Shown: one piece after another, positions 3,001 through 50,200 of the stretch
Layout: each line of letters begins with the position of its first letter
Position numbering within the stretch: position 1 is the first letter of the stretch
Source: Bugula neritina
Lineage: Eukaryota > Animalia > Bryozoa
NCBI GenBank assembly: GCA_964035545.1
Contig: OZ037769.1
Location: 16,894,633 to 16,958,632, forward strand
Direction: 5' to 3'
Length of the DNA: 64,000 nucleotides
Notes under the pieces: generated by a model
What the model was told of the DNA's origin: nothing
Databases searched by the model: none
Seen by the model: the letters and a program-made list of their open reading frames with translations, nothing else
Position numbers and translations under genes: made by a program

Positions 3001-6000
3001 GCTTCCCGCGCTGTCATCACATGATCAGCAGTATCCTTGAATAGTGTAATAATATGCTGTGTCATGTATTTACAGGTAAGTACTAAGTAGGCCATTTATT
3101 TACAGGTAAGTACTAAGTAGGTCATGTATTTACAGGTAAGTACTAAGTAGGCCATTTATTTACAGGTAAGTACTAAGTAGGTCATGTATTTACAGGTAAG
3201 TACTAAGTAGGTCATGTATTTACAGGTAAGTACTAAGTAGGTCATGTATTTACAGGTAAGTACTAAGTAGGTCATGTATTTACAGGTAAGTATTAAGTAG
3301 GTTATGTATTTACAGGTAAGTATTAAGTAGGTCATCTATTTACAGGTAAGTACTAAGTAGGTCATGTACTTACAGGTAAGTGCATATTGCCAGCTGCCTG
3401 ACTCGACGCTCTCATAGCCTCATCCATTATTTTCTTAGCTTGAGTTTCTTCTTCCACAGTGCGGAGGCCCGACTGGCGTGTCCTTGGAATCAACTTGGGG
3501 TCATCTGGAAGGTCAGCTTCAAAGGCATTCAGAAGAAACCCAGCAGACGTGTTCCAAACACTTTCTCCTGTAAATGTATCACATCAGGGTGAAAGATGTG
3601 AACTCAATTCTGATTGGCTAAGAGCACACTAACATGTTACCTAATTGGCTAAGAATACCCATGTATTCTAATTACAATGTCACAATAATTATTTCTATAT
3701 GAAGAAATGCAAACAGTTACATGGAAAGACAACTACAGGTATCACCGAAATATAACTGAAATTGCTGGTACTAGTTTCTACAATGTATTCATATTAGTTT
3801 ACACTGAGAGTCAGAGTGAATGTTAAACTCAGCTGTTACAGTTTCATTATTTTATATAGTATGTATATAGTGTGTATATAGTGTTTATATAGTATGTATA
3901 TAGTATTTATATAGGATTTATAAAGTATTCAGTATTCAGTATATAGTTGGTGTATGACTGTATGCAATATAATATTGTCAGCAATAAAGTGAACTTACGC
4001 TGAGCTGCCTCTCTCCCGACAGCAGCAATGGACTTCCTCAAGTCACCGAATGTTATTGAAGTGTTGACAGGATCAAACATATTTTCTTCACCCTGTAATA
4101 TAGTAATATATCAAAAATCAATCTCTGTAAGCCATTTTGTTCAACTTTGAATACCGAAATGATATTATAACAACTTGCAGGCACATTAAAAGCTGCTTTT
4201 AGAAACCGTGACTTAAACTTGTAATCTTCCAGCTATGCCATTTTCTAGTATCTGTTTAGCTATTTTAATTCATTAGCTTTATTTCTTTCAATGTATACCT
4301 TTGATTATTTTTAATGTATACTTTTAATATTATAACATTTTATCTTATGGCTGTGGCATTTACACATTTACACTTGTACACATGTACACATGTACACTTG
4401 TACACTTGTACACTTGTACACTTGTACACTTGTACACTTGTACACATGTACACTTGTACACTTGTACACTTGTACACTTGTACACTTGTACACTTGTACA
4501 CTTGTACACTTGTACACTTGTACACTTGTACACTTGTACACTTGTACACTTGTACACTTGTACACTTGTACACTTGTACACTTGTACACTTGTACACTTG
4601 TACACTTGTACACTTGTACACTTGTACACTTGTACACTTGTACACTTGTACACTTGTACACTTGTACACTTGTACACTTGTACACTTGTACACTTGTACA
4701 CTTGTACACACGAAACTAATAATAATAAAATGCTTTATCAAATTGTATCCTACTTGCTAACTATATATAATAAAAGCACTCAGTTTCACTGTATTTTTCT
4801 GTAAGTAATATAGTAATATAGTAAGGTGCAGTGTGAATGATATAATAGGCAGTTTTGTGTAATGACAGTTCTAGTTTCTTAAAACAAAATACTCTACGGA
4901 ATACTGTATGGAATACTCTATGGAATACTATATGGAATACTCTGTGGAATACTGTATGGAATACTCTATGGAATAATCTATGGAATACTATATGGAATAC
5001 TATATGGAATACTCTATGGAATACTATATGGAATACTCTATGGAATACTATATGGAATACTCTATGGAATAATCTATGGAATACTGTATGGAATACTCTG
5101 TGGAATACTATATGGAATACTCTATAGAATACTCTGTGGAATACTCTGTGGAATACTCTACGGAATACTATATGAAATACTGTATGGAATAATCTATGGA
5201 ATACTCTATGGAATACTCTGTGGAATACTATATGGAATACTCTACGGAATACTCTATGGAATACTCTATGGAATACTATATGGAATAATCTATGGAATAC
5301 TCTATGGAATAATCTATGGAATACTGTATGGAATACTCTGTGGAATACTATATGGAATACTCTATGGAATACTCTATGGAATACTATATGGAATACTATA
5401 TGGAATACTATATGGAATACTCTATGGAATACTCTATGGAATACTATATGGAATACTCTACGGAATACTTTATAGAATACAACAGAACCAGCAGACACTC
5501 ACGGGTCTATCCAGCAGATAAGGATTCGTCCCATCTGGTAACAGGATACTCCTCTGAGATGGGCGGAGCTTATACCTCACAGCTCTGCGTGGTTCCGGAG
5601 ACACACCCCTTGCAGGGGGAACTGGGATACAATAGGCTTGTTTGGGCTTAGCCCCAGTCTCTTTCACTCTCTCTACGTGCTGGTAAAAGACACCAGAAAC
5701 ATACAACACATAGTAGACACTTCAATTATAGAGTGTAAAATTATGTTCTTCTTTAAGAGGCAGAAAATATTCTACATTTTGCAACATTTTTACTTGAAAA
5801 ATGATCCGCTAGTAACTACTAAGTGACTTTGCATATTGTAAGAATTTAAATGAGCTTTTTATGGATAAACTATTCATAGAATAGTTTGATCACAACTTGA
5901 TAATAGCTAGTTGCTATTATTATACATGCAATTTAAGAGTTATCTTCACTTTAAGAGTTGCCTTCACTTTAAGAGTTGCCTTCACTTTAAGAGTTATCTT

Positions 6001-13800: not shown

Positions 13801-16800
13801 TAATAATGTATTATATTATTGTATTATGTTATATTTGGCATTGATGTGTTGCAGAGATATGCAGGCATTAGATAGAATACGCAGACAAGACATCAAGCTA
13901 CTCAAGGAGCTCAGAGTTAACCATATCTGTGATCTAATGTTGGAGAATAAGAAAGTCAAGTATTTCCTCAAGTAAGTTTAACACTCGGTCCTAATAGGTT
14001 AACCTAGGATACCAAGTTTGTAGTTACCTTCTTGTCTCGTATTACGTAACGGATTAAGTGGGTTAGAAATATCTACTTGAGCTGTAAGTATTTATTGGAA
14101 AACTATCCTGAACAAATTATAAAACCTTTTTTGAAACAACTGCATGAGTCATCATCAGAAAGTAAGGTGTATATGAAATGACTTTGACCCAAGGATTTGA
14201 GTTATGCAATATTTAAGTTAACTAGATAAGAGTGTGTTATGTCTATATATTTCCACAGTGTGTTATGTCAATATATGTTGACAGTGTGACATCTTCGGAG
14301 AAGGTTGATAAACTCAACAGGTACTCTGATTTCTCTCTCTGGAGTCTACCATATCCTGGATGTGAATTCTTTAAGGTATGGAGTTATCACACTTTGAGAC
14401 TCAGTTACTTGGGAGGATAACTCTGCATTATACTTTTCTACATTCATTTTTATATATTCTGTAATTATTTTGTTTGAATTTTTTTATGATGCCTAAATTT
14501 ATGATAAGACAACTGAAAGAAATCATTTTTAAAGTAGGCTGTTGGAATAAGCGTTTAGCGTGTCACTTGTGGAGTTTGTATGAGCTTATGTTTACAATGT
14601 TATGTACAGGTGTGAGTTTATATTGCTGTGTTATGTACAGGTGTGAGTTTATATTGCTGTGTTATGTACAGGTGTGGAGGGACAGAGATTACGATGCGGA
14701 TAGAATAGTGTTTGACTGGAGTCAGGAGTTTGTAAATTCCGAGTTGGAGATTCCTCAGGAATCCCCCCACCTGCACATACCTGACATTTGCTGGAAGGAA
14801 TACAAGACTTGGAGTTTGATTAAACTCACACAGAACTACCTGAATATTATACTCCGACATGTACAGTCAGGTGTGTTACTATATGAATATTATACTCACA
14901 TATATATACAGTATATTACTATATAAATATTATACTCACATATATACAGTATATTACTATATATGAATATTATACTCACATATATACAGTATATTACTAT
15001 ATATGAATATTATACTCACATATATACAGTATATTACTATATAAATATTATACTCACATATATATACAGTATGTTACTATATGAATATTATACTCACATG
15101 TATACAGTATATTACTATATAAATATTATACTCACATATATGCAGTATATTACTATATGAATATTATACTTACATATATACAATATATTATTATATGAAT
15201 ATTATACTTACATATATGCAGTATATTACTATATGAATATTATACTTACATATATACAGTATATTACTATATGAATATTATACTCACATATATGCAGTAT
15301 ATTACTATATGAATATTATACTCACATATATACAGTATATTACTATATGAATATTATACTCACATATAGGCAGTATATTACTATATGAATATTATACTTA
15401 CATATATACAATATATTAATATACGAATATCTCCACAGGAGACTCGGGTCTTCTAGTCCACTGTATCTCGGGGTGGGACCGGACCCCCCTCTTCATATCT
15501 CTGGTTAGACTGTCTCTCTGGGCCGATGGTCTCATACATAAATCCCTCTCATCTCTAGAAATACTCTACTTCACAGTAGCATACGACTGGTACCAGTTCG
15601 GGTGAGTCACCCACACTTCCTGTTTGATAGTCTTCCTGTCTGGGAGCCATTTTGAATTATCCATCTTGTTTTTGTCACTTTTTATTTCAGGATCACTCTT
15701 GTACGTTTGGGTTTTGCTTTGTGGGTTTTTCTTTTGTTGAATCTATTTCATTGTATTTCTTTCGAGTTATAGTACTCATTCAACTAACTCGTACTGACCT
15801 CAACTCGTCTGTTTGTAGCCATGATTTGCCGGATCGTCTGCAGAAGGGAGAGGAAATCATGTTCTTCTGCTTCTACTTCCTCAAGTTCTTCCAATCAGAG
15901 GAGTTCATCGTTCACTTTCCAACGTAAGACTAGTTCATTGTTCACTTTCAGATTCTACCACGTTGGTCTATCATGTGATATATTGTTGTTCTTCTACTCA
16001 ACCTATTAACCAATGGCTTTTCCCATAACCCCCCTTTTCCCACTTCACTTCCTGCCATTGCTTCTTAATCAGTCGCTTTTCATTTCATCTGCTAGCAATT
16101 GTAAAAGCTTTATTGATTGGTCCAACGGTTTTAGTAAGTGAGCTCATTAGCTGGCAAATTGCTCTTCAATAAGAAACCAGTTCATCGGTTGGCTGATTAA
16201 TTTTAGCGCGAGTCGGTCACGGAATGTCTCCTCAACTGACCTAGATATGCACTATCCAATGGGAGTGTTGCTAGACGCTGACTTTCCACCCTTCGGCAGC
16301 TCCTCTAGTCTGTGTAGTGACCAGAGCATGTCCAGTCGCTCCGATGCCGCGCCTCAGCTCTTCATGGTCGAGTCGACCGAGAAAGACGGCACGATGACTA
16401 GCTGCCCCTCCAGCTCTGCCCTCAATGGGTCAGAACCTCTGCTAACTTTACACTCCTTGCCCTTGCATCATTCTTATGTTTGTTGCTCTTCAAAACCTGA
16501 TCTGTGTAGGTTTGGTTCAGGAAATTAAATTAATGTCAGAAATTGTCTTATCTTAGTGGTTCTGTTTATATATCTTGGTATTTCAGGTCAAGGCCAGTTT
16601 CCGTGCCTCTCAGAGTTGCAGATTCCGGTAGCGGTTCATCTGGCAGGAGGAGCGACTCCCCATCTGTTGGCAGGTGTGTAGGTCCTTATATATCAGTATA
16701 TTAGCTATGTGGCAGGTGGTCACAGGTGTTACAGTATACTAGCTATGTGGCAGGTGGTCACAGGTGTTACAGTATACTAGCTATGTGGCAGGTGGTCACA

Positions 16801-17544
16801 GGTGTTACAGTATATTAGCTATGTGGCAGGTGGTCACAGGTGTTACAGTATACTAGCTATATGGCAGGTTGTCACAGGTGTTACAGTATATTAGCTATCT
16901 AACAGGTGGTCACAGGTGTTACAGTATATTAGCTATGTTACAGCTGGCAGGTGGTCACAGGTACCGGGAGTTATGTAGAGTCCGTTTCTCCGCACTCAGG
17001 AACAGACGCCCACCGCCGCCTCTCCAGTTCCGGTGAATTCTCCAGACACTCAGCTAGTCTGTGAGTTGAATATTTCTTAGCGTTTGATCCTAAACTTTAG
17101 AGATTAGACTCTGGCTCTACCATCTGAGCAACTCAATCTGTGTTCTCTTGACCTGTTTATTGCCAGAAAATAAGGCTGAGATAACTTTTATGTCTTTTGG
17201 TTTGAATCAGACGAAGTTTTGCTTGCATCATTTCTTCATATGAAATATCTGTCCGTCATTTGCCTTCTTTCTCTTGGTCTGTCCGTCTCTTATATTCACT
17301 TTTATTTACATCCTTCTGTCCTTCACCTTTATCTTCTCATACAACTGAACATTAACTCTGCTCTTGCAGTTCCGAACTTCATCACGAACCTTCCCCACGG
17401 CGGACTCGGCTGGAGGAAGTGAGGTCACTGTTCTATCACGCGTACGCTTCCACCGTCGGCTTCAAGAACGGCACCGACGATAGCTCCAATCTATTCGATA
17501 TGTTGACGGACAAAATGGTCGCCCTCGGCAACAAGCTTGCCTGA
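10826..17544 (+). CDS. MTMR14: Myotubularin-related protein 14 (Jumpy/EDTP-type phosphoinositide 3-phosphatase), 14 coding exons, about 586 aa
   Basis: Exons 10826-10921, 12157-12213, 12630-12827, 13043-13115, 13447-13507, 13855-13971, 14285-14375, 14672-14870, 15439-15601, 15819-15923, 16207-16428, 16587-16673, 16944-17060, 17370-17544 total 1761 nt with phases matching. Intact CX5R catalytic motif VHCISGWDRTPLFISL; also RFARCRTRFVVPVI, VTSSEKVD, PYPGCEFF, GEEIMFFCFYFLK, SWQVVTGTGS. Confidence 0.95.
13117..13362. repeat. Degenerate (AGT)n microsatellite in an MTMR14 intron
   Basis: Directly visible. Confidence 0.85.
14841..15430. repeat. About 36-bp minisatellite (ATGAATATTATACTCACATATATACAGTATATTACTAT) filling MTMR14 intron 14871-15438
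   Basis: Directly visible; the unit resembles the 3' end of the upstream exon. Confidence 0.92.
16702..16962. repeat. 38-bp minisatellite (TAGCTATGTGGCAGGTGGTCACAGGTGTTACAGTATAC), 6 copies plus the true exon start
   Basis: Directly visible. Confidence 0.95.
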
Positions 17545-18449
17545 CTTCCTGTAGAAATCGTGTCATATAACTATCATGTAGCGGAGTTTAAGGCATTTTA
17601 ATTATTATTATGTAAATAAGTTTATATTTTATATAATAATGTTTTAGTGCTCCAAGTAACATGACTTGCTCATTGCTGTTTATTAATATTATTAAATAAT
17701 GTTAAGTCTTTATTCCATCAGCTTACTATTGCAGCTTCCCACCCAAGTTTCTCTCCTGGGTGTAGCTATGCATTTCTGTGAGTCACTTCTACTAAACGGT
17801 GATTGTTTTTATTTTAAATTGAATTTCTTGTAACTTGTTGGGTGCTGCCTATCCTTGTTATACATGTTCAACTGCTGCCTAGTTTTACTCGACTGTAGTT
17901 AAGTATTCTGCACTTCATTTTATATTATTTCGTCTTATGTCCGTATATTATATTACAATATTCTCTTTGTAGAAGACTTGTTAATAGTTTACATGTGCAT
18001 TAGATACCTACATCATATTCTATGTTTCATTTATATTGTTTTATGTATCAACTTGTGATTTTATTTCCATTTGATGTAACAAATTGTAATATATTAAATA
18101 TTATGTTATGGTATATTGATCTTTGTTGTATATTTTATTAGAATTTAAGAGTCGTCTTCCCAATTGGGATTTGTTAAATGGTTGTTCTATATCAAAGCTG
18201 CCTGTGGAAAGACTCATTTTCAATTTTATGAGTCTTAAGGTAAAAAGTAATTGTCTAATATAACATCAATGTAAGGAAAGTTCTGGAAAACTAGCTCTAT
18301 ACTTAATAATGTAGTCGACACATGATAAGCATAATAATCTTTTCCTTGTTAAACTGTGGACGTTCCAACATATTATCAGTATGCTCTTACCCTACACCTA
18401 TTGGAATAATCTATGTGAGAGAAAGCATATGGTAGCAGTCTACTGTTGG

Positions 18450-18456
18450 TATATAA
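18450..18456 (+). promoter_or_regulatory. Putative TATA box of the D8C/NWT-repeat gene
   Basis: TATATAA about 40 nt upstream of the ATG at 18493. Confidence 0.45.
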
Positions 18457-18492
18457 GGTTCATGTTCCTTTTACATGTCTTCTATCTACACT

Positions 18493-20316
18493 ATGAGGGA
18501 GTTACGTCTTGTTCTTTCTGCCTTCTGCATTGTCATTGCGGCAGATTTGAGTTCCGCTGCCGTCTTGCCGGGATCCTCAGTACTTCAGCCAGTTTACAAC
18601 TATGACCTGAGAATTCAAGTGCTACACACCATTCTCACTCTAGAGTGTCCTCACTACTCCTACTATGACAAACCTTTGGGTCGACGGCAGCAAGACTTGA
18701 GTGACCTTGAAGCTGATAGGTTAGTATACAGGAAGTTGTACAAAGATTTGATGGAATGCAGGAGATCCAGAGAGCAGACAACTTCTTATAAGGTTACTTC
18801 CACTACAGAGTGGTCGTTAGGAAACAACACTCTGAATTCTACTGTCCTTCCATCTAACTGGACCAAACCTTCATCTAATTGGACCAAACCTTCATCTAAT
18901 TGGACCACACCTCCTTCTAATTGGACCACACCTCCATTCAACTGGACCATGCCTCCTTCTAACTGGACCACTCCTCCATCTAATTGGACCATGCCTCCAT
19001 TTAATTGGACCACACCTCCATCTAATTGGACCATGCCTCCATTTAATTGGACCACACCTCCATCTAATTGGACCATGCCTCCATTTAATTGGACCACACC
19101 TCCATCTAATTGGACCACATCTCCATCTAATTGGACCACACCTCCATCTAACTGGACCGTGCCTCCATCTAATTGGACCATGCCTCCATTTAATTGGACC
19201 ACACCTCCATCTAATTGGACCATGCCTCCATTTAATTGGACCACACCTCCATCTAATTGGACCACATCTCCATCTAATTGGACCACACCTCCATCTAACT
19301 GGACCGTGCCTCCATCTAATTGGACCAAACCTTCATCTAATTGGACCAAACTGTCATCTAATTGGACCACACCTCCATCTAACTGGACCACACCTCCATC
19401 TAATTGGACCAAACCTTCATCTAATTGGACCAAACCGTCATCTAATTGGACCACACCCCCATCTAATTGGACCATGCCTCCATCTAATTGGACCATTCCT
19501 CCATCTAATTGGACCATGCCTCCATTTAACTGGACCATACCTCCATCTAATTGGACCACATTTCCATCTAATTGGACCACACCTCCATCTAACTGGACCA
19601 TGCCTCCATCTAATTGGACCAAACCTTCATCTAATTGGACCAAACCTTCATCTAATTGGACCAAACCGTCATCTAATTGGACCACACCTCCATCTAACTG
19701 GACCATACCTCCTTCTAATTGGACCACATCTCCATCTAACTGGACCATGCCTCCATCTAATTGGACTGCACCTTCATCTAACTGGACCACATCTCTTAAT
19801 TGGACCACGCTTACAAATAATTTGACATCAATTCCTAATCAATCTAATGATAACTCATTTACAGCAAACATCTCTACTGGAGGAAATGTAACACAACTTC
19901 CAAAAGAGTGCCTGGAAGCTCAGTTTTTCACAGAGTCATGGCGTTTGCGTCACAATGGAGATGATTTCCGTGGATCCGGTAACCACTCTTTCTTTGGATA
20001 CGCCTGTGACCTGCACCAGATCCAGTGGTTCAGGTTTTCTGGTGCTGCTGGGAGTCGTCTGCTAAACACCTGCCCTCCTCCGGAGAGCTGTGGTACGAGT
20101 CTTCCAATATGGAGTGACGCAGATATGCCGGACTCAGTAGGCGTCGTTACTAATGTCGAAGCATACGCCGTCTCGTATTCAGGTGATTGTAAGAGCGACA
20201 CATACCCTCTCAGCGTTATGAGATGTTCTCACTCAGCCAATGATTTCATCTACAAGCTAGTCAACCCTGTCACTCATAATTATCCTTGCTTCACAGCTTT
20301 CTGTGGTATGAGATAA
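18493..20316 (+). CDS. Secreted protein: signal peptide, short helical region, 46x NWT heptad repeat, C-terminal D8C/D10C (uromodulin/GP2/OIT3-type) domain
   Basis: Single uninterrupted ORF (track ORF 18475-20316). The second Met (18493) gives the signal peptide MRELRLVLSAFCIVIAADLSSA and lies downstream of TATATAA at 18450. The C-terminus CLEAQFFTESWR...ACD...QWFRFSGAAGSRLLNTCPPPESCGTSLPIW...C...VMRC...FIYKL...CFTAFCG fits the D8C pattern. No ZP, TM or GPI segment. AATAAA at 20501. Confidence 0.88.
   Translation: MRELRLVLSAFCIVIAADLSSAAVLPGSSVLQPVYNYDLRIQVLHTILTLECPHYSYYDKPLGRRQQDLSDLEADRLVYRKLYKDLMECRRSREQTTSYKVTSTTEWSLGNNTLNSTVLPSNWTKPSSNWTKPSSNWTTPPSNWTTPPFNWTMPPSNWTTPPSNWTMPPFNWTTPPSNWTMPPFNWTTPPSNWTMPPFNWTTPPSNWTTSPSNWTTPPSNWTVPPSNWTMPPFNWTTPPSNWTMPPFNWTTPPSNWTTSPSNWTTPPSNWTVPPSNWTKPSSNWTKLSSNWTTPPSNWTTPPSNWTKPSSNWTKPSSNWTTPPSNWTMPPSNWTIPPSNWTMPPFNWTIPPSNWTTFPSNWTTPPSNWTMPPSNWTKPSSNWTKPSSNWTKPSSNWTTPPSNWTIPPSNWTTSPSNWTMPPSNWTAPSSNWTTSLNWTTLTNNLTSIPNQSNDNSFTANISTGGNVTQLPKECLEAQFFTESWRLRHNGDDFRGSGNHSFFGYACDLHQIQWFRFSGAAGSRLLNTCPPPESCGTSLPIWSDADMPDSVGVVTNVEAYAVSYSGDCKSDTYPLSVMRCSHSANDFIYKLVNPVTHNYPCFTAFCGMR
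18856..19806 (+). repeat. Coding 21-bp tandem repeat (consensus AATTGGACCACACCTCCATCT; NWT[T/M/K]P[P/S]S), 46 units
   Basis: First AAC at 18856, last AAT at 19798 (44 intervals of 21 nt plus one of 18 nt). The frame is kept throughout. Confidence 0.97.
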
Positions 20317-21807
20317 TTTATTATATGACTTATTTGTTGATCCTAGTTGTCACATGATCATTTGTTGGTCCTAGTAGTCACGTGATCATTTGTGAAGAGC
20401 TTTTTATATGTGTTGTCTGGAAATCAGTTTTTGATTTTAAAGACGAAGTCATATATATGATTTAACTGCAAAAAGTTGCAAAATTATATTATTTTGATGG
20501 AATAAAGTAAAATTGACAACTTCAAAACCTAGCTGTGCTACCCAATATTGAAAATATTCTATAACACTTTTAACTTTGTCAATCCCATTAACCTGTTGGT
20601 GTATTCTCATAGTATAGAGCTATTTTAGAGACTTCACCTTGACCTAGCAGACTGGTATCTGGCAAGCAATGTGTAGTGTCTGTGCTTAATCTAAACTTAG
20701 CCAAGCCAAAAAATGTAGACAGACAGACAAGCCAAAACATGCAACTTGATGCTAAACATATATTGCTACATTCTCCATAATTCTTCAGATCAGACAACCC
20801 TGACATATGTATCCCACTGGAAAGCAGCAATCAATTTCTCCCACATGCACACAGTGTGTTTATACTCGTTTGGTGTACAGAGACAGCTGCAATCCTACCT
20901 GCGCTGAATAGATCACAAATATTAAATACTCCTTCTCCCCCTCTCCCCCTTTACTGTATCCCCTAAGTTATATCTCATAGCACAAAATTGTTTGCGTGTA
21001 CTTTAATAGATTTCTTTCAGTTTATGCAGATGTTACTCTGGCACACTTTTTCTCGACACTGCTTATTTTATGCCTAAACTGTCACCTTGAAACATCTCGG
21101 ACTGAAACACAATACGCCAATACTACTTGCTTGCTTCATAAAAAGTGGGCGGAGTTTGTTGGACTATGCATTTTTGAGCTCAAAATTGTAACAAGTTTCC
21201 TTTTCCTTCCACAACATTTCTCAGCACATTATATTAAAATTTATGCTTTTCAAACCTCAATGACAATTTTATTTTTTACTGCCCTGTAAATTATTTACTT
21301 TATTGAGTCCAATGAAATGTATATCTCCTAAACCTTTTAATTTATAGTTTTAAAAAGGTAAACGGTTTTTAATTTGTCTGACATATAAATATGTTTTACA
21401 TTTCCTTTAACTATAAAAACATGAATGTGGAATTTTTAAAAGGCAAGAGTTATTAGCTGGATATTATATGGCATGCATATTTCATTGCAACATGCAGCTA
21501 GAATAGATACCATGTCAACATCAATCAATCACTTTTCAATGTATCTTATTTGCGTGTAGCAATTGGTATGTGACTGTCATTAATATATTGGAAATATACA
21601 AGACACGCCTATCACCTCCCCTACCGACAAATGCTTTGGTTTTCCAACTAAATATATGCTGATGATAACAGAAGAATATAAACTCACAATCTCGACTGAT
21701 CAACGCACTCTGTACCAGATCTGTGCAACGACAAGACCTTAGTAGAGTTGACTGCAGCACGCGAACAGCACACTTAACGTCTCCTGGTATATTGCTGCGA
21801 GAATAAA

Positions 21808-24800
21808 ATGGATTCTCTATTTTTATTTGGAGTAATTTGTATGGTAAGCAAGTTTTTATTGTGTTTATAGGCTTAGAGTATAAAAATGTAATACTAATAT
21901 TTAAATCAATTTATGTAATATATTGCACAACCAATAAATATTGCATATAAGGCTACAAGATATATATAACAGTAAATCTAATTTGTTTTAGTTATTGTGG
22001 CTTACGACTGTTGTTTTTATTTATACTGTTTATATCTCTAGGGAAGAAGTTAATCCTTTGGTATTACATATAATATACAAGCCTTTAAAACTTGTTAAAA
22101 GGTGCTTCATTGCTCAGGCTTTAAAGCATTTATGTAGCTCATGGCTTTCAGCACAATTAAGTGTTGCTGCAACTTTATTTTGAAGTTGAGAATTGACTAG
22201 AAGAATAAATTAATATTCCATCAAGGGAAAGGGCGTCCACCTATGCTAAATTATGTATATTAGCTAGAGCAATTGTATTATCATTGTTTCATGAAGATGA
22301 GGAGGTGAGCATGTTAGTCAGGTGTGTATGTCTACAGCTGGGTGGGACCGGTGAGCAACATCTAGCCTGTGATCTATGTGTTTACTAGGTTCTCTCAGGG
22401 GTGGCTGGCTGGTGCCCCCCACACACTAGCATCAGAACTTCACCTATCAGAGGTCTAGATTTCCCCAGAGCGCTCCATCAGTCTTGCTGCCAGGGGAGAG
22501 GCAACTCCTGTGGATGTGGTGGAGGACTTCAGTGCTGCCCCAACACCGACATCAGATTCATGTGTGTAGGTCAGTAAGACATCAGGTTCATGTGTGTAGG
22601 TCAGTATGGCAACAGGTTCATTTCGATAGGATTTCTGTTTGGAGCTGTAAATGTGTGTCATTGTAAAAACACAACTTATATTAGATTGCAGTTGCAGTTT
22701 GTATTACATTTATATATTTATTTATTTATATATTACATTTCAGATGCGTGTAATATGATGTATTTAGTAATGTTATTACAAGCCCTTTAACGCAAATTTG
22801 ATCCATTAAATAACAATTAGAAAAAAATTGAGCTTCCAAATAATAAACCATGTAGCACTTCTTCATTATCACATTTTTAATGATTTCTTAAAACTATGCT
22901 GTTGGGGGGAATACCTACTGATAACCTCTGCTGCCTGAATGGTGTTCTAATGCAAACCCTTGGTGTTAGTATACAGGTACTAAGCTCCATGTACCTTTAC
23001 CAGGTTAATAGTTATGCTAACAACTGTGCTCTAACAACAATAGTTGCCATGGTTACTGTATCAATTCGCCATCTCTACAACAATGTTTCCCTGTGTTTGA
23101 ATTTACCTCACGCAGCCAAGTTCTGCTATCAGCTGCTGGTATGCAGTAGAGTTGGTTATTTAGTTGTGTTGAACTTTACTCTCAGCTACATGAATATAGG
23201 TGTATAGTAAACTTGTAGGAGTTGTCTTTACTCTTTCCTTGCGAGACTCAAGGGGTCTTTCAGTTTAGTTATTGTTTTTATTCAAAAGCTTTGAGGTTAA
23301 ATTTACGAGTTTTCTTGTCATATATTTACAATTTCCTATACAAGAAAAATTCTTATTACTTTTGTTTATAATCTCCACTCCTGTAAGAACCCCCCCCCCC
23401 CAAGGTAGCTACAGGCTGTGCCATGCTGGCAATGTGCTCTTTGTGACATCATGCCAATGTTTTGCTGGAACTGAACTCATGACCTCTGCTATACTAGACC
23501 CGAGCTCTCACCACTAGACTACAACTACCACCCTAATAGTGTCTGCAGGAAAAACCTAGAACAGATGTTTGATTCTATACAAATCTCACAGTTATAACTA
23601 TAAATTTCTTTTTCACTGCTAAATTAATAAGCCCCACTCATTCACAAAATTTACTGTAAATTTTATATTCCTTATTAACAAGCTCTAATAGAGTTTGCAG
23701 AAAGCCTAAGAATATATTATTAATTATATTTTATTATATTACATAATTTGTATATTGGAAGATCTTACATATATTATATTACACTATGCTGTACTATACT
23801 GTATTATATTATATTATATATTATATTACATCCTATTATATTATATTATATTATAGTATATTTTTATGTATTGGAAAGATAAATATTATATCAGGCATCC
23901 TTTGAAGACAAAGAAAATATTTGGCTGGAGAAGTTTTGTTCTTGTCAGTTGGCCGATGTTCAAATACTAATATGAAATATTTGGCATATTTTAATCTACC
24001 AATTACTATTTCCTGACGACAGAAAAGTATTTTACACAAAAAAACTTTTTAGTTTTCCTGCTTCAGAAATTATCTTTTTCTATTTTCTTTTATGAGTCAT
24101 AAAATACCAAAAGGGCGTATATTTTTATTAGCTTCAGCACTTTAGTTTTGGTGTAGCGTCAGTTTTGTATTAATAGTTAAATATTTTTATTGCATAAAGC
24201 AGCTAACGACCTATTTTTTTGTAAAAGATATTAACCAGTGATAACTGGTAAAAGGTGAAAAATATATACCTATATAGAAAGAGAGGAGTAAAATGTTTAG
24301 TGTACTCATTAAATCGGAGTATTTATGGCCAATTCTTCTTCAAGATCTGCTGAGGTCAAAATTTTGAAAAGCTTTTTTGAACTTAAAAATGTCAAAAATT
24401 TAATTTAACTCTGGCACCACTAAGTTTCAGCTGAATATATATGGGTCCTCTTTATTTGTTCATTCATGGAAGGAATTTACAGTAATTGAACATAGCGGAA
24501 GGGAATATTTTATGTTATTATAGAATGGTAAGTCCCGGAGGCAATATTGTACAGTCTGTTAGGTGCCCGTCTGTTATACCCAGCAAAGTATTTTAATTAA
24601 CTCAGCTAATATGGATTAAGGGATTAGTGGTAATAAGTGGTTTGCCTGTCGCGGTTATTTATGGCTACAGTTGAAGCTATAAATAGCTGCGGTCATTTAA
24701 TCTAATGCAAGTAGAGAAAGTTTAAAGGGAGTTCCTATAATATCATGTTACACAATCAAACTGGAAGTTTTACCTTGATGTGCATAATATTATATCCTAA

Positions 24801-47200: not shown

Positions 47201-50200
47201 TAATAATGCTAAAAGCAGTGATTTTAGGTTTAGCAAAATCATGTTAATCAAACAAGCAAGTGATGATTTGAAAGTTAGTAAAACAGAGCATGCAGCATGA
47301 ATTTACTAAATGTCCTTCACCTTCAAAGAAGTCATAACCTTAGCATGATCAGAAGTGATGACCTTGACAGTAGTGCTGCCCATAGCAGATGTGTAGCCGG
47401 CATCGGTCGCTCCGTTACTAGATGGAGCTGTAGTGTGGGATGGAGGGAAGGAAGAGCTAAAGTTAAGGGACGTATTCGTAACCGCTCTCAAATCAGTGAG
47501 TGAAGTGGTGCTAGTGAGTGAATCCAAGTCTGAGACTGTTTCTGTTACAGAGGAAATCGTCTGCAGCACACTGATTGGCTGTTTAGTTGTAGGAGTTTTC
47601 TCTCTTTCAATAGTCTCGGTTGGAGTAGAGAAAAGGGAAGTTGATGTGGTTAGTTCAGTGGGAGTTGGTGATGCTGTTGCAGTTCTAGATGCCAAAGTGT
47701 CCGTAAAGATCAAGTGGGTTGTCACATTTACCTCTACAACATTTTGATTGTCTTCAGGTATTGTTGCCACTTCTTCTAGCAGTTCAGCACCTGGTATCGA
47801 GTTATTTGACCTTGAGTTATTTGACCTCGAGTCCGAGTCGACAGAGACAGATTCATGAGTGACATTAAGCAATGTCTTTGCATCATTGTGTTCAACTGTT
47901 GATGCTGACGGCGGAAAAACTTCTGTGTCAAAGTTAACCACCGATATGTTGAGGCTAGATACGGGCGGGGCAGGAGCCCCCGCTGCGGCTGGCTGCTGCT
48001 TAGAGTTAGATTTGTGCTGATTGGTTGGATGTGCAGAATCATTAGTGGTTAGTATTGGTGCAGACTGCAAAGCATAAAGTAAGACTCAAAAGCAAGCTGG
48101 TGATCACCTTATGATGCTACTAGTTTACTAGTCTACTAGTCTACTAGCTACTAGTCTACTAGTCTACTAGTCTACTAGTCTACGAGCTACTAGTCTACTA
48201 GTCAAGGTGATCAGTCGGTGACATGCTAAGAAATTAGATTCACAATCTCTCACTAGCTGGATTAGTGTTTGTTTCAGCAAAGTTAATAATTTGTTGAAAT
48301 TGACTTGTAAAAAGGTATGAAAATTTCACTTTTAAGGCAAAACTTCTTTTGTAATGGAGATACTAAAATCATGCATAATGTAAAATAACTTCTTGTCTGA
48401 AAAGGCAAACTAAATACTAAGCAATAAGAAAAAAACTAAACTAGGGTGTCCTTAGCATGCAGAAAAGTTCAAAGGTGTGTCTAAAAAAGCTGAAGACGTG
48501 CTAAAAACTAGTGCATAATTATATTTCACTCAACAACCAACACTGCATCACCAATCTTATGCTTTGTGTGCAAGCTCGAGGTTAGTAGTGTTGCATATTG
48601 TGTATATATTGTGTATATATTGTGTATAATGCAATATATTTACTAGCAAAATTATAATGTATTACATGTATATACGATAGTTCTTGGTTAATTTATTGTC
48701 AAGATGATTATATGACAAGACAGAAAAATATAAACTGTATTATATATCACTATACAGTATAATATTATATATTACAGTATAACATATTACAGTATACTAT
48801 ATTACAGTGTATTATATTACAGCTATATTATATTACAGTATATTATATTACAGTATATTATATTACAGTATATTATATTACAGCAGTATATATTACAGCA
48901 GTATACTATATTACAGTGTATTATATTACAGTATATTATATTACAGTATAATTATTATATTACAGTGTATTATATTACATTATAATATATACCTCAGTAT
49001 CATCAATAATCTGTCCATCCACCACATACTCTCCACCAGGTAATTGTTCCTACAAGAATAGAGGCGGAAAGCTTACTAAGACATCCTGTTGTAACATTTC
49101 TCTTTCACAAAACTCACACCTCAATGGCTTGTTGCAAGACATATTATATTTACTTGAGCACTGACGCATTACCAACTAGCGTTAACTTGTTTCAAGTGCT
49201 TGTAGACTTGATAATGATACTTGATTACTCCTCAACTTAAGTCTCAATCATCCAATCACATTAATTGTTTAATACGCATTCTTTTGAGTAGATGAAAATT
49301 AGCTAATCTGTCACAAACCTCACTGTGTAAACTTTCAGCTGTAACTTAATATCATGTTTGTTGTCCAACTCAAAACAACACAAACATGCTGTTGCTGTTT
49401 GAGAAACAATATTGAATAATGAGCCAACATCTTTGATCTTGTTTTGTCATTTGACACTATGGATTTTGCAGCTTTGTCTCAAGTGTAGAAAATTAAGTAC
49501 TCATTGTTAAACTGTAAACGGCACCTTTTGAGTGATTATGGTATTTATAGAAAAAATCTGTTATGATATAAGCTGATCTTCTGTCACAAGTTGACAGCAT
49601 TTTTCTACCTTAGCAATTGGACCACATAGCCATTGGACCACATAACTATTGGACCACCTGGTCTAATGGACCAGACAGCTATTGGGCCACGTACCTAACA
49701 AATGGGGCCATGCACAGACTGGCCCAAAGAAATAACTAAATTTATGCTGTCATGTAATACTTATGCTTCTAAGCTAAAACAACATATTCATGTACAACTA
49801 TGCAGGAGATACTGCGGTTTTATTATCACTATATATAGAAACTATTGTGGTTAGAAATATTTTACAGAATAGTAATTCGTAGCACTTTGTAGACACCCAC
49901 CTTCTTATCATCTACTCTAATCTCACATTGTCTAGCAGCATCTGAAGGGTCATTGGTTAGCAGAAGCTCCTGTATTTCTCCCTGAAAAGACAAGACAACT
50001 CTAATGATGAAACTAATAATATTGTGTTTGAAAAGTGCGGTGAAGTGGAATCCTGAATTATAGACTGCTAGCCCAAATCACAGAAGAGAATGCTTGCAAC
50101 ATGTACTAATATTTATGGAGTTTTAAATATAATATTAACTACAAATATACAGCATGTGAAGTTGAGCATGTAAATATAGTGGAAACAGACCAACAATGAG

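Follow-up and report, generated by a model that had tools for sequence, protein, structure and literature searches.

The window analysed here is a 64,000-nt stretch of the Bugula neritina genome (contig OZ037769.1 of assembly GCA_964035545.1, designated C5; C5:16894633-16958632). Its + strand carries a gene in which a regular array of 46 Asn-Trp-Thr (NWT) N-glycosylation sequons is joined to a C-terminal D10C domain of the type known from uromodulin (UMOD) and GP2. The gene is intronless and is a member of a family of small, predicted secreted proteins that has expanded in bryozoans. It lies in an intact, uninterrupted open reading frame (ORF) of 613 codons at 18475-20316, with in-frame ATGs at 18475 and at 18493, the latter being Met7 of the 613-residue reading. 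We consider Met7 the likelier start, because the paralogues begin at an equivalent MR.L.. signal peptide and a conserved TATA-like box, TATATAAG, lies upstream at 18450-18457 (+). This putative element, found by motif scan, sits ~36-43 nt 5’ of the Met7 ATG, and the initial annotation of the locus had chosen the same start. Read from Met7, the coding sequence is a single exon at 18493-20316 (+), stop codon included, that encodes 607 residues. A putative AATAAA polyadenylation-type signal was found by the same kind of scan at 20501-20506 (+), 185 nt past the stop codon. The antisense ORF of 340 residues at 18786-19808 (-) is a mirror of the repeat and was not taken as a gene.

Read coverage was examined in sequencing run X1 over 16600-22500 (5,901 letters). 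Depth was even at ~100-130x in genic and intergenic sequence alike; X1 is therefore a DNA run and is silent on expression. Six variants fell in the coding sequence, five synonymous and one non-synonymous (Pro to Ser). Variant contigs at about half depth, at 17567-18615 and at 19404, suggest two haplotypes; 1-bp indels occurred upstream of the coding sequence, and variants within it were substitutions only. Some loose contig ends in this run belong to a paralogue on C8 (L003). The intact ORF, the 5:1 ratio of variants, a ratio of non-synonymous to synonymous divergence (dN/dS) well below 1, the conserved TATA-like box and the polyadenylation-type signal lend indirect support to expression of the gene.

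Tandem Repeats Finder placed the repeat at 18849-19808, with a period of 21, 45.9 copies and 86% matches. The 46 invariant NWT triplets reported in the initial annotation were all recovered, though as 44 exact heptads plus two degenerate units. The exact heptads, N-W-T-[T/M/K/I/V/A]-[P/S/L/F]-[P/S]-[S/F], extend over 18856-19779 (+), and the degenerate terminal units, NWTTSL and NWTTLTN, follow at 19780-19818 (+) with NWT retained. Spacing between successive triplets is exactly seven residues in 44 instances and six in the last. A per-unit tally showed positions 4-7 to vary as originally listed. Pro is absent directly after Thr in every NWT unit, again in agreement with the first reading, and Lys occupies that position in 9 of the 44 regular units. 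Codon usage within these 44 units also bore out the synonymous variation described at first (AAT/AAC, 34/10 for Asn; ACC/ACT, 43/1 for Thr), and Trp is always TGG. At the DNA level 21 different sequences occur among the regular units (pairwise identity 86% on average), and these encode 11 amino-acid types, the commonest of which accounts for 14 of the 44.

Sequons are not confined to the array. A short linker ahead of it (18823-18855, +) holds NNT and NST, the non-repetitive tail behind it (19819-19896, +) holds NLT, NQS, NIS and NVT, and the C-terminal domain contributes NHS; all seven of these flanking sites had been named previously. The total is 53 sequons in 613 residues, each of the form N-x-T/S with no Pro at +1 in a protein predicted to enter the endoplasmic reticulum (ER), and Trp fills the X position in 46. 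The whole spacer between the N-terminal region and the D10C domain, array included, is 382 residues long and consists of 21% Thr, 16% Ser and 20% Pro (57% in sum). It thus also has the character of a mucin-type Pro/Thr/Ser (PTS) region, a long tandem repeat rich in these residues within a protein that has a predicted signal peptide.

We searched for similar arrays elsewhere. A metagenome scan for three AAYTGGAC units at 21-bp spacing returned, among the matches listed, unrelated 21-bp repeats, none of which resembled the gene. The two-unit pattern occurs in the B. neritina genome only in this array and in short arrays on C4, C6 and C7, and no open NWT frame of at least 90 aa was present at the short arrays. 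The C6 repeat (C6:15792901-15792992, within the interval C6:15789500-15796500, L037) reads NWTTGSV on the minus strand. It was rejected as a second NWT protein, for the repeat falls within an open frame of 290 aa on the plus strand that translates as GPVDRAG. Nor did a feature search of the ESM Atlas, queried with the array, give a usable match.

A repeat of this kind might be uniform simply for having expanded recently; the distribution of variation among units speaks to this. Of the 21 nucleotide sites in the repeat unit, 12 are variable: both synonymous sites (in the Asn and Thr codons) and 10 of the 12 sites in codons 4-7. The seven non-degenerate sites of AAY-TGG-ACN are all fixed, whereas 12 of the remaining 14 vary (hypergeometric P = 3.1e-4). 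Third codon positions are variable in 6 of 7 cases in the NWT frame and in 3 of 7 in each of the other frames, a pattern that singles out the NWT frame as the translated one. These data demonstrate constraint on N, W and T, and they argue that the triplet is held by purifying selection, more than by recent expansion alone, as the initial annotation had supposed when it proposed that a sequon is kept every seven residues.

Comparison with an orthologue supports the same conclusion. Database searches with the focal C-domain, C-piece and N-piece identified no full-length orthologue, only two fragments in JGI metagenome contigs (L028 and L160; samples 3300003318 and 3300002729), which presumably derive from B. 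neritina-associated material of a sibling lineage. In L028, which is 91% identical to the focal gene, 15 NWT units are followed by the sequon tail and the D10C domain; the synonymous divergence (dS) is 0.167 and dN/dS is 0.26 in the C-domain. Its 450 nt of coding sequence contain no indels, versus 37 gap positions in a 554-nt 3’ flank that is 82.5% identical. L160 holds the N-region (dS 0.28, dN/dS 0.21) and 11 NWT units, and 7 kb of its upstream DNA is syntenic with the window at 83% identity; the TATA-like box is unchanged there, in surroundings that are only 83% identical. Across both contigs NWT is retained in 26 of 26 units, and the two lineages have just 2 amino-acid unit types in common out of 17. 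The initial annotation had allowed that orthologous repeats might prove to lack sequons, which would make NWT constancy a mere product of recent expansion; the orthologous repeats have them throughout. Sequons outside the array are also maintained, with NQS, NIS and NVT conserved in L028 and NST kept in L160.

The product looks secreted. A signal peptide of ~22 residues (18493-18558, +) is predicted by inspection; a charged n-region (MRELR) precedes its hydrophobic core, and cleavage is expected near the junction of SSA and AV. It aligns with the N-termini of the paralogues, consistent with the signal peptide first proposed, and AlphaFold2 (AF2) gives a helix over residues 2-22. Beyond it lies a family-specific N-region (18583-18783, +) without a match in a Pfam scan, predicted by AF2 to form two helices (residues 31-51 and 71-97; per-residue confidence, pLDDT, ~64-94). 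Its two nearly invariant cysteines, C52 and C89, are each conserved in at least 90% of 45 family members, and we take the region to carry a disulfide. A full-length AF2 model built on the alignment of these 45 sequences shows the signal helix and predicts, with confidence, two further helices and the D10C domain; the array has a pLDDT of ~40 and no secondary structure, and is predicted to be disordered. An ordered, solenoid-like repeat was considered and set aside, as this pLDDT gives it no support, which is weak evidence for an array that lacks alignment depth.

The C-terminal domain (19897-20313, +) is 139 residues long, with eight invariant Cys and one sequon. Queried as a single sequence it matched Pfam PF23283 at an E-value of 7e-4, and its 20 bits fell short of the 27 required; homologues in the databases bear a precomputed PF23283 annotation. 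A profile of 25 paralogous domains matched UMOD and GP2 only in the PDB (E 2.7e-10 to 4.7e-9). An AF2 model of the domain built on the 25-paralogue alignment had a pLDDT of 95.4, and its best 12 PDB matches in Foldseek were all the GP2/UMOD decoy module (probability 1.0, TM-score 0.66-0.71), the next match having an E-value of 0.3. By sequence profile and by predicted fold, then, the domain is a genuine UMOD/GP2-type D10C, and the original assignment holds even though the lone sequence falls below the Pfam threshold. D10C domains have ten Cys in five disulfides, C1-C8, C2-C9, C3-C6, C4-C10 and C5-C7 (PMC8930769). The eight found here correspond, by inspection of the alignment, to C1, C2, C3, C4, C6, C8, C9 and C10, and the positions of C5 and C7 are missing when aligned to UMOD. 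Four disulfides are expected because the C5-C7 pair is missing. Pfam found the D8C domain alone, with no ZP module and no EGF domain, and the ORF ends two residues past the last D10C Cys, with no hydrophobic tail or anchor; the lack of a ZP module and of an anchor had both been recorded in the initial annotation.

The gene is one of many that share this plan. There are 31 matches to the D10C domain in the genome, ~27 of them full-length, with clusters on C5, C8 and C2. The paralogues are mostly intronless and are 40-60% identical within D10C. In each of the 15 nearer ones (L002-L016) a single ORF of 205-380 aa encodes the signal peptide found here, the two-helix N-region with its two conserved Cys, a stalk of 10-155 residues and a D10C domain. 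In a more distant subfamily (L018-L027), several members have no signal peptide in the ORF read, and an upstream exon is probably present in those. Stalks of the paralogues are Thr/Pro-rich, with up to 68% Thr, 0-5 sequons and no Trp, and some members have no stalk. Among all of them NWT heptads are confined to the focal gene, whose stalk is the longest. Five close stand-alone D10C genes with Thr-rich stalks of 53 to 134 aa form a tandem cluster at C5:15.60-15.63 Mb (L002, L004-L007).

A maximum-likelihood tree groups the focal gene and its orthologue in one clade (support 100/98), places a paralogue with a PTS stalk as sister (89/87), and nests both within a subfamily whose members mostly bear PTS stalks. 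Because of this nesting we regard the NWT array as a derived state of a mucin-like stalk. The initial annotation had recommended a check of the paralogues for other sequon-bearing repeats, and one was found. On C2 (C2:33233200-33236700; L022:1508-2878, -) a 457-aa ORF has ~18 stalk repeats of 13-14 aa (..AIPFNTT.TTT..), each with an NTT or NTS sequon preceded by Phe at -1, for 20 sequons in a 242-aa stalk. It belongs to the distant subfamily and has no signal peptide in the ORF. Its stalk, independent of the NWT array, is the second in the D10C family to bear sequons.

An exhaustive profile search retrieved 1,680 representatives at E <=1e-3, 150 of them at E <=1e-30. Sequon density reached a maximum of 3.1% among the best 150 family representatives, versus 8.6% in the focal protein. 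The named single-domain homologues were hypothetical proteins of B. neritina (KAF6016429.1 and KAF6036150.1) and ‘OIT3-like’ proteins of Watersipora subatra, and one coral protein carried many copies of D8C. Zebrafish omcins were rejected as lone-D10C proteins, for they carry EGF and ZP modules. The literature on D8C and bryozoa, Bugula and uromodulin, sequon repeats, and Bugula adhesive glycoproteins contained no account of the family or of a comparable sequon array. The initial statement that no protein of this architecture is described was nevertheless too strong: a signal peptide, a stalk and a lone D10C domain define a large bryozoan family, though we found no paper on it.

In sequence terms the NWT sequons offer a favourable context for oligosaccharyltransferase (OST): Thr stands at +2, Pro is absent from +1 and +3, and Ser or Phe precedes the Asn. 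In human cells NWT is glycosylated more efficiently than NWS, Trp at +1 is tolerated, and Pro at +1 or +3 is disfavoured (preprint 10.64898/2026.09.03.749169). Each unit also keeps Thr or Ser beside Pro (T-P-P-S, K-P-S-S), which is ordinary O-glycosylation-type sequence. The initial annotation had described a mucin analogue built on N- rather than O-glycans. The likeness to mucins stands, given that the paralogues carry Thr/Pro mucin-like stalks at the same place; ‘rather than O-glycans’ overstated the case for units that retain T/S-Pro in a spacer with 57% T+S+P.

We can outline how such a protein might mature, and here secretion, sequon occupancy, brush behaviour and biological role are what we infer. 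The nascent chain would pass into the ER, where OST would glycosylate many of the 53 N-x-T/S sites, those in the array lying seven residues apart; the T/S-Pro remainder of each unit would probably be O-glycosylated too. The outcome would be a stiff, hydrated, protease-resistant brush of N- and O-glycans along ~320 residues, which would space the D10C head from the N-terminal helices. The protein could serve as a component of mucus, cuticle or an adhesive layer, or as a multivalent lectin ligand. We put it at slightly better than even that the gene encodes a secreted D10C-family member whose Thr/Pro stalk has been re-patterned into 46 NWT heptads, kept by selection, that form a mixed brush of N- and O-glycans. 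A more specific proposal, to which we would give somewhat less than an even chance, is an ‘N-linked mucin’: the brush would be mainly one of ~50 N-glycans, set every seven residues on a disordered Pro-rich chain that evolved from a PTS stalk, and the invariant Trp would serve to tune use of the acceptor or to stack against the core of the glycan.

Several observations weigh against a selected, mixed brush, and they are best considered together with the explanations that they would favour. The sole public run covering the locus is of DNA (X1), and a 166-bp exact internal duplicate (shift 147 bp) marks recent turnover of the array. In addition L160, the sole sibling contig to reach the 5’ part of the gene, lacks 15 bp (in frame) and another 10 bp (a frameshift) immediately before the array (L160:6820-6870, aligned to window ~18790-18830). 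The 10-bp deletion places its array and D10C in another frame than the signal peptide. (The alternative frame in L160, ..LIGPHLH.., crosses the array without a stop and ends a short way beyond it.) The gene may be dispensable or decaying in the sibling lineage, L160 may carry a null allele that arose recently or is polymorphic, or the contig may be in error; in run X1, which may be the assembly’s own sample, one contig crosses the N-region/array junction without gaps. On a contrary reading, the array would be a young minisatellite undergoing concerted evolution in a family member that can be dispensed with, NWT constancy would be mostly a founder effect, and the gene would be heading to pseudogenisation; the duplicate, the frameshift, the DNA-only coverage and the recurrence of one amino-acid type in 14 of 44 units speak for it. 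We judge this improbable, as the array has 21 distinct DNA units at 86% mean identity, with variation at 12 of the 14 other sites and at none of the seven NWT sites (P = 3e-4), and its third-position variation is coding-like. Despite a dS of 0.17-0.28 and an overlap of just 2 in 17 unit types, both lineages keep NWT throughout. The dN/dS values of 0.21-0.26, the C-domain free of indels beside a gapped 3’ flank, and five synonymous variants to one non-synonymous also run counter to decay.

A further difficulty for the glycan brush is Trp itself. A sequon alone does not predict absolute invariance of Trp across 72 units (46 here and 26 in the orthologue), as position X tolerates almost any residue, and this implies a constraint beyond the sequon: Trp might tune the acceptor, stack on glycans, or act in adhesion or binding. 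Trp at +1 is moreover under-represented among human glycosites (preprint 10.64898/2026.09.03.749169), and it is a novelty of this gene, the paralogue stalks having no Trp at all. These points, and the Lys that follows Thr in 9 of 44 units, would suit a Trp-centred structural or binding motif: Trp set regularly on a Pro-rich extended chain, often beside Lys, might act in adhesion by cation-pi or hydrophobic contacts, or bind cuticle chitin or polysaccharide or biofilm, with N-glycosylation partial or incidental. We regard such a motif as unlikely, since Asn and Thr, exactly the residues of the sequon, are as invariant as Trp; Thr is never replaced by Ser, a choice that matters most where X is Trp; Pro is avoided at +3 in spite of the Pro-rich unit; and the non-repetitive flanks gather sequons that are conserved in the orthologue. 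AF2, too, shows no ordered structure. C-mannosylation of Trp was discarded as a general explanation, since its consensus, W-x-x-W/C/F/Y, is satisfied by one unit only. The remaining alternative is a soluble decoy for mannose-binding bacterial adhesins, in which the UMOD/GP2 mechanism would be multiplied by 46 high-mannose glycans. The D10C homology and fold match to the FimH-binding decoy module, the density of sequons and the habits of a filter feeder living in biofilms (the last a matter of general knowledge) lend it some appeal. In UMOD and GP2, however, a disulfide-stabilised beta-hairpin packs on D10C and a protected high-mannose N-glycan lies in the groove (PMC8930769). No beta-hairpin was detected upstream of D10C here; that region consists of the disordered sequon tail and the repeat, with no Cys pair before C1 within the stalk, and the groove that protects the glycan is not reproduced. 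On an exposed, disordered array we would expect processed glycans, and there is no ZP polymer scaffold. A family sequon, N-[F/L/Y]-[T/S], stands five residues after Cys1 in 21 of 25 paralogues (window 19909-19920; alignment columns 9-12), near GP2 N65, the FimH-binding glycan site, judged by position relative to Cys1. It is lost here, where the sequence reads QFFT, and likewise in the orthologue, a loss that also counts against the interpretation we favour. The FimH-type decoy is a weak idea, and improbable.

Two other open frames in the window were noted. One of 254 aa at 47306-48070 (-) is Ser/Thr-rich with many N-x-S/T sequons, and may belong, as an exon, to a further secreted protein of the mucin-like kind. 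The other, of 245 aa at 4761-5498 (-), has a pentapeptide repeat (HRVFH / HIVFH) and is most likely a stop-free 15-bp tandem repeat.

To our knowledge, dense glycan brushes on secreted proteins are built on O-glycans, and D10C has so far been understood solely in vertebrate ZP-module proteins, as part of decoys for bacterial adhesins. If the NWT stalk does form a mixed glycan brush, the co-translational OST pathway could be used to make such structures, with a sequon every seven residues, and the array would be a natural test of the limits of N-glycan packing and of an aromatic residue at X. Should the N-glycans predominate, as in an N-linked mucin, it would represent a new route to extracellular glycan polymers and a ready scaffold for multivalent N-glycan display. 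The analysis also brings to notice a large bryozoan family of proteins in which D10C stands alone. Because B. neritina is a major fouling animal whose bacterial symbiosis has been well studied, it would be of practical interest if the protein acted in adhesion, in the cuticle or in the handling of microbes.

Compared with the D10C domains of UMOD and GP2 (PF23283; PDB 7P6R, 7PFP, 7Q3N), the focal domain has the same fold (TM ~0.7, profile E 3e-10) but eight rather than ten Cys, the C5-C7 pair being absent, and it stands alone at the C-terminus. The focal protein differs further from UMOD and GP2 in having no detected beta-hairpin, no EGF domains, no ZP module and no glycosylphosphatidylinositol or transmembrane anchor, and no sequons at the equivalents of UMOD N275 or GP2 N65. 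From the ZP-module glycoproteins as a class (UMOD, GP2, OIT3/LZP) it is set apart by the lack of their ZP-N/ZP-C module, usual EGF domains and anchor. Its closest likeness is to the bryozoan stand-alone D10C proteins, with which it shares the architecture, the N-region, the D10C domain and a stalk between the same two anchor points; theirs are Thr/Pro stalks with 0-5 sequons and no Trp, whereas the focal gene alone has NWT heptads. The PTS repeats of secreted mucins are likewise long, low-complexity, Pro-rich tandem repeats, and the focal array, predicted to be disordered and lying in a spacer with 57% T+S+P, resembles them also in its turnover, which is of the variable-number tandem repeat type. 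Mucin brushes are O-linked, and the vWD, CysD and cystine-knot polymerisation domains of mucins were not found by Pfam in the focal protein. What distinguishes its units from PTS repeats is that each has a strictly conserved N-sequon and Trp.

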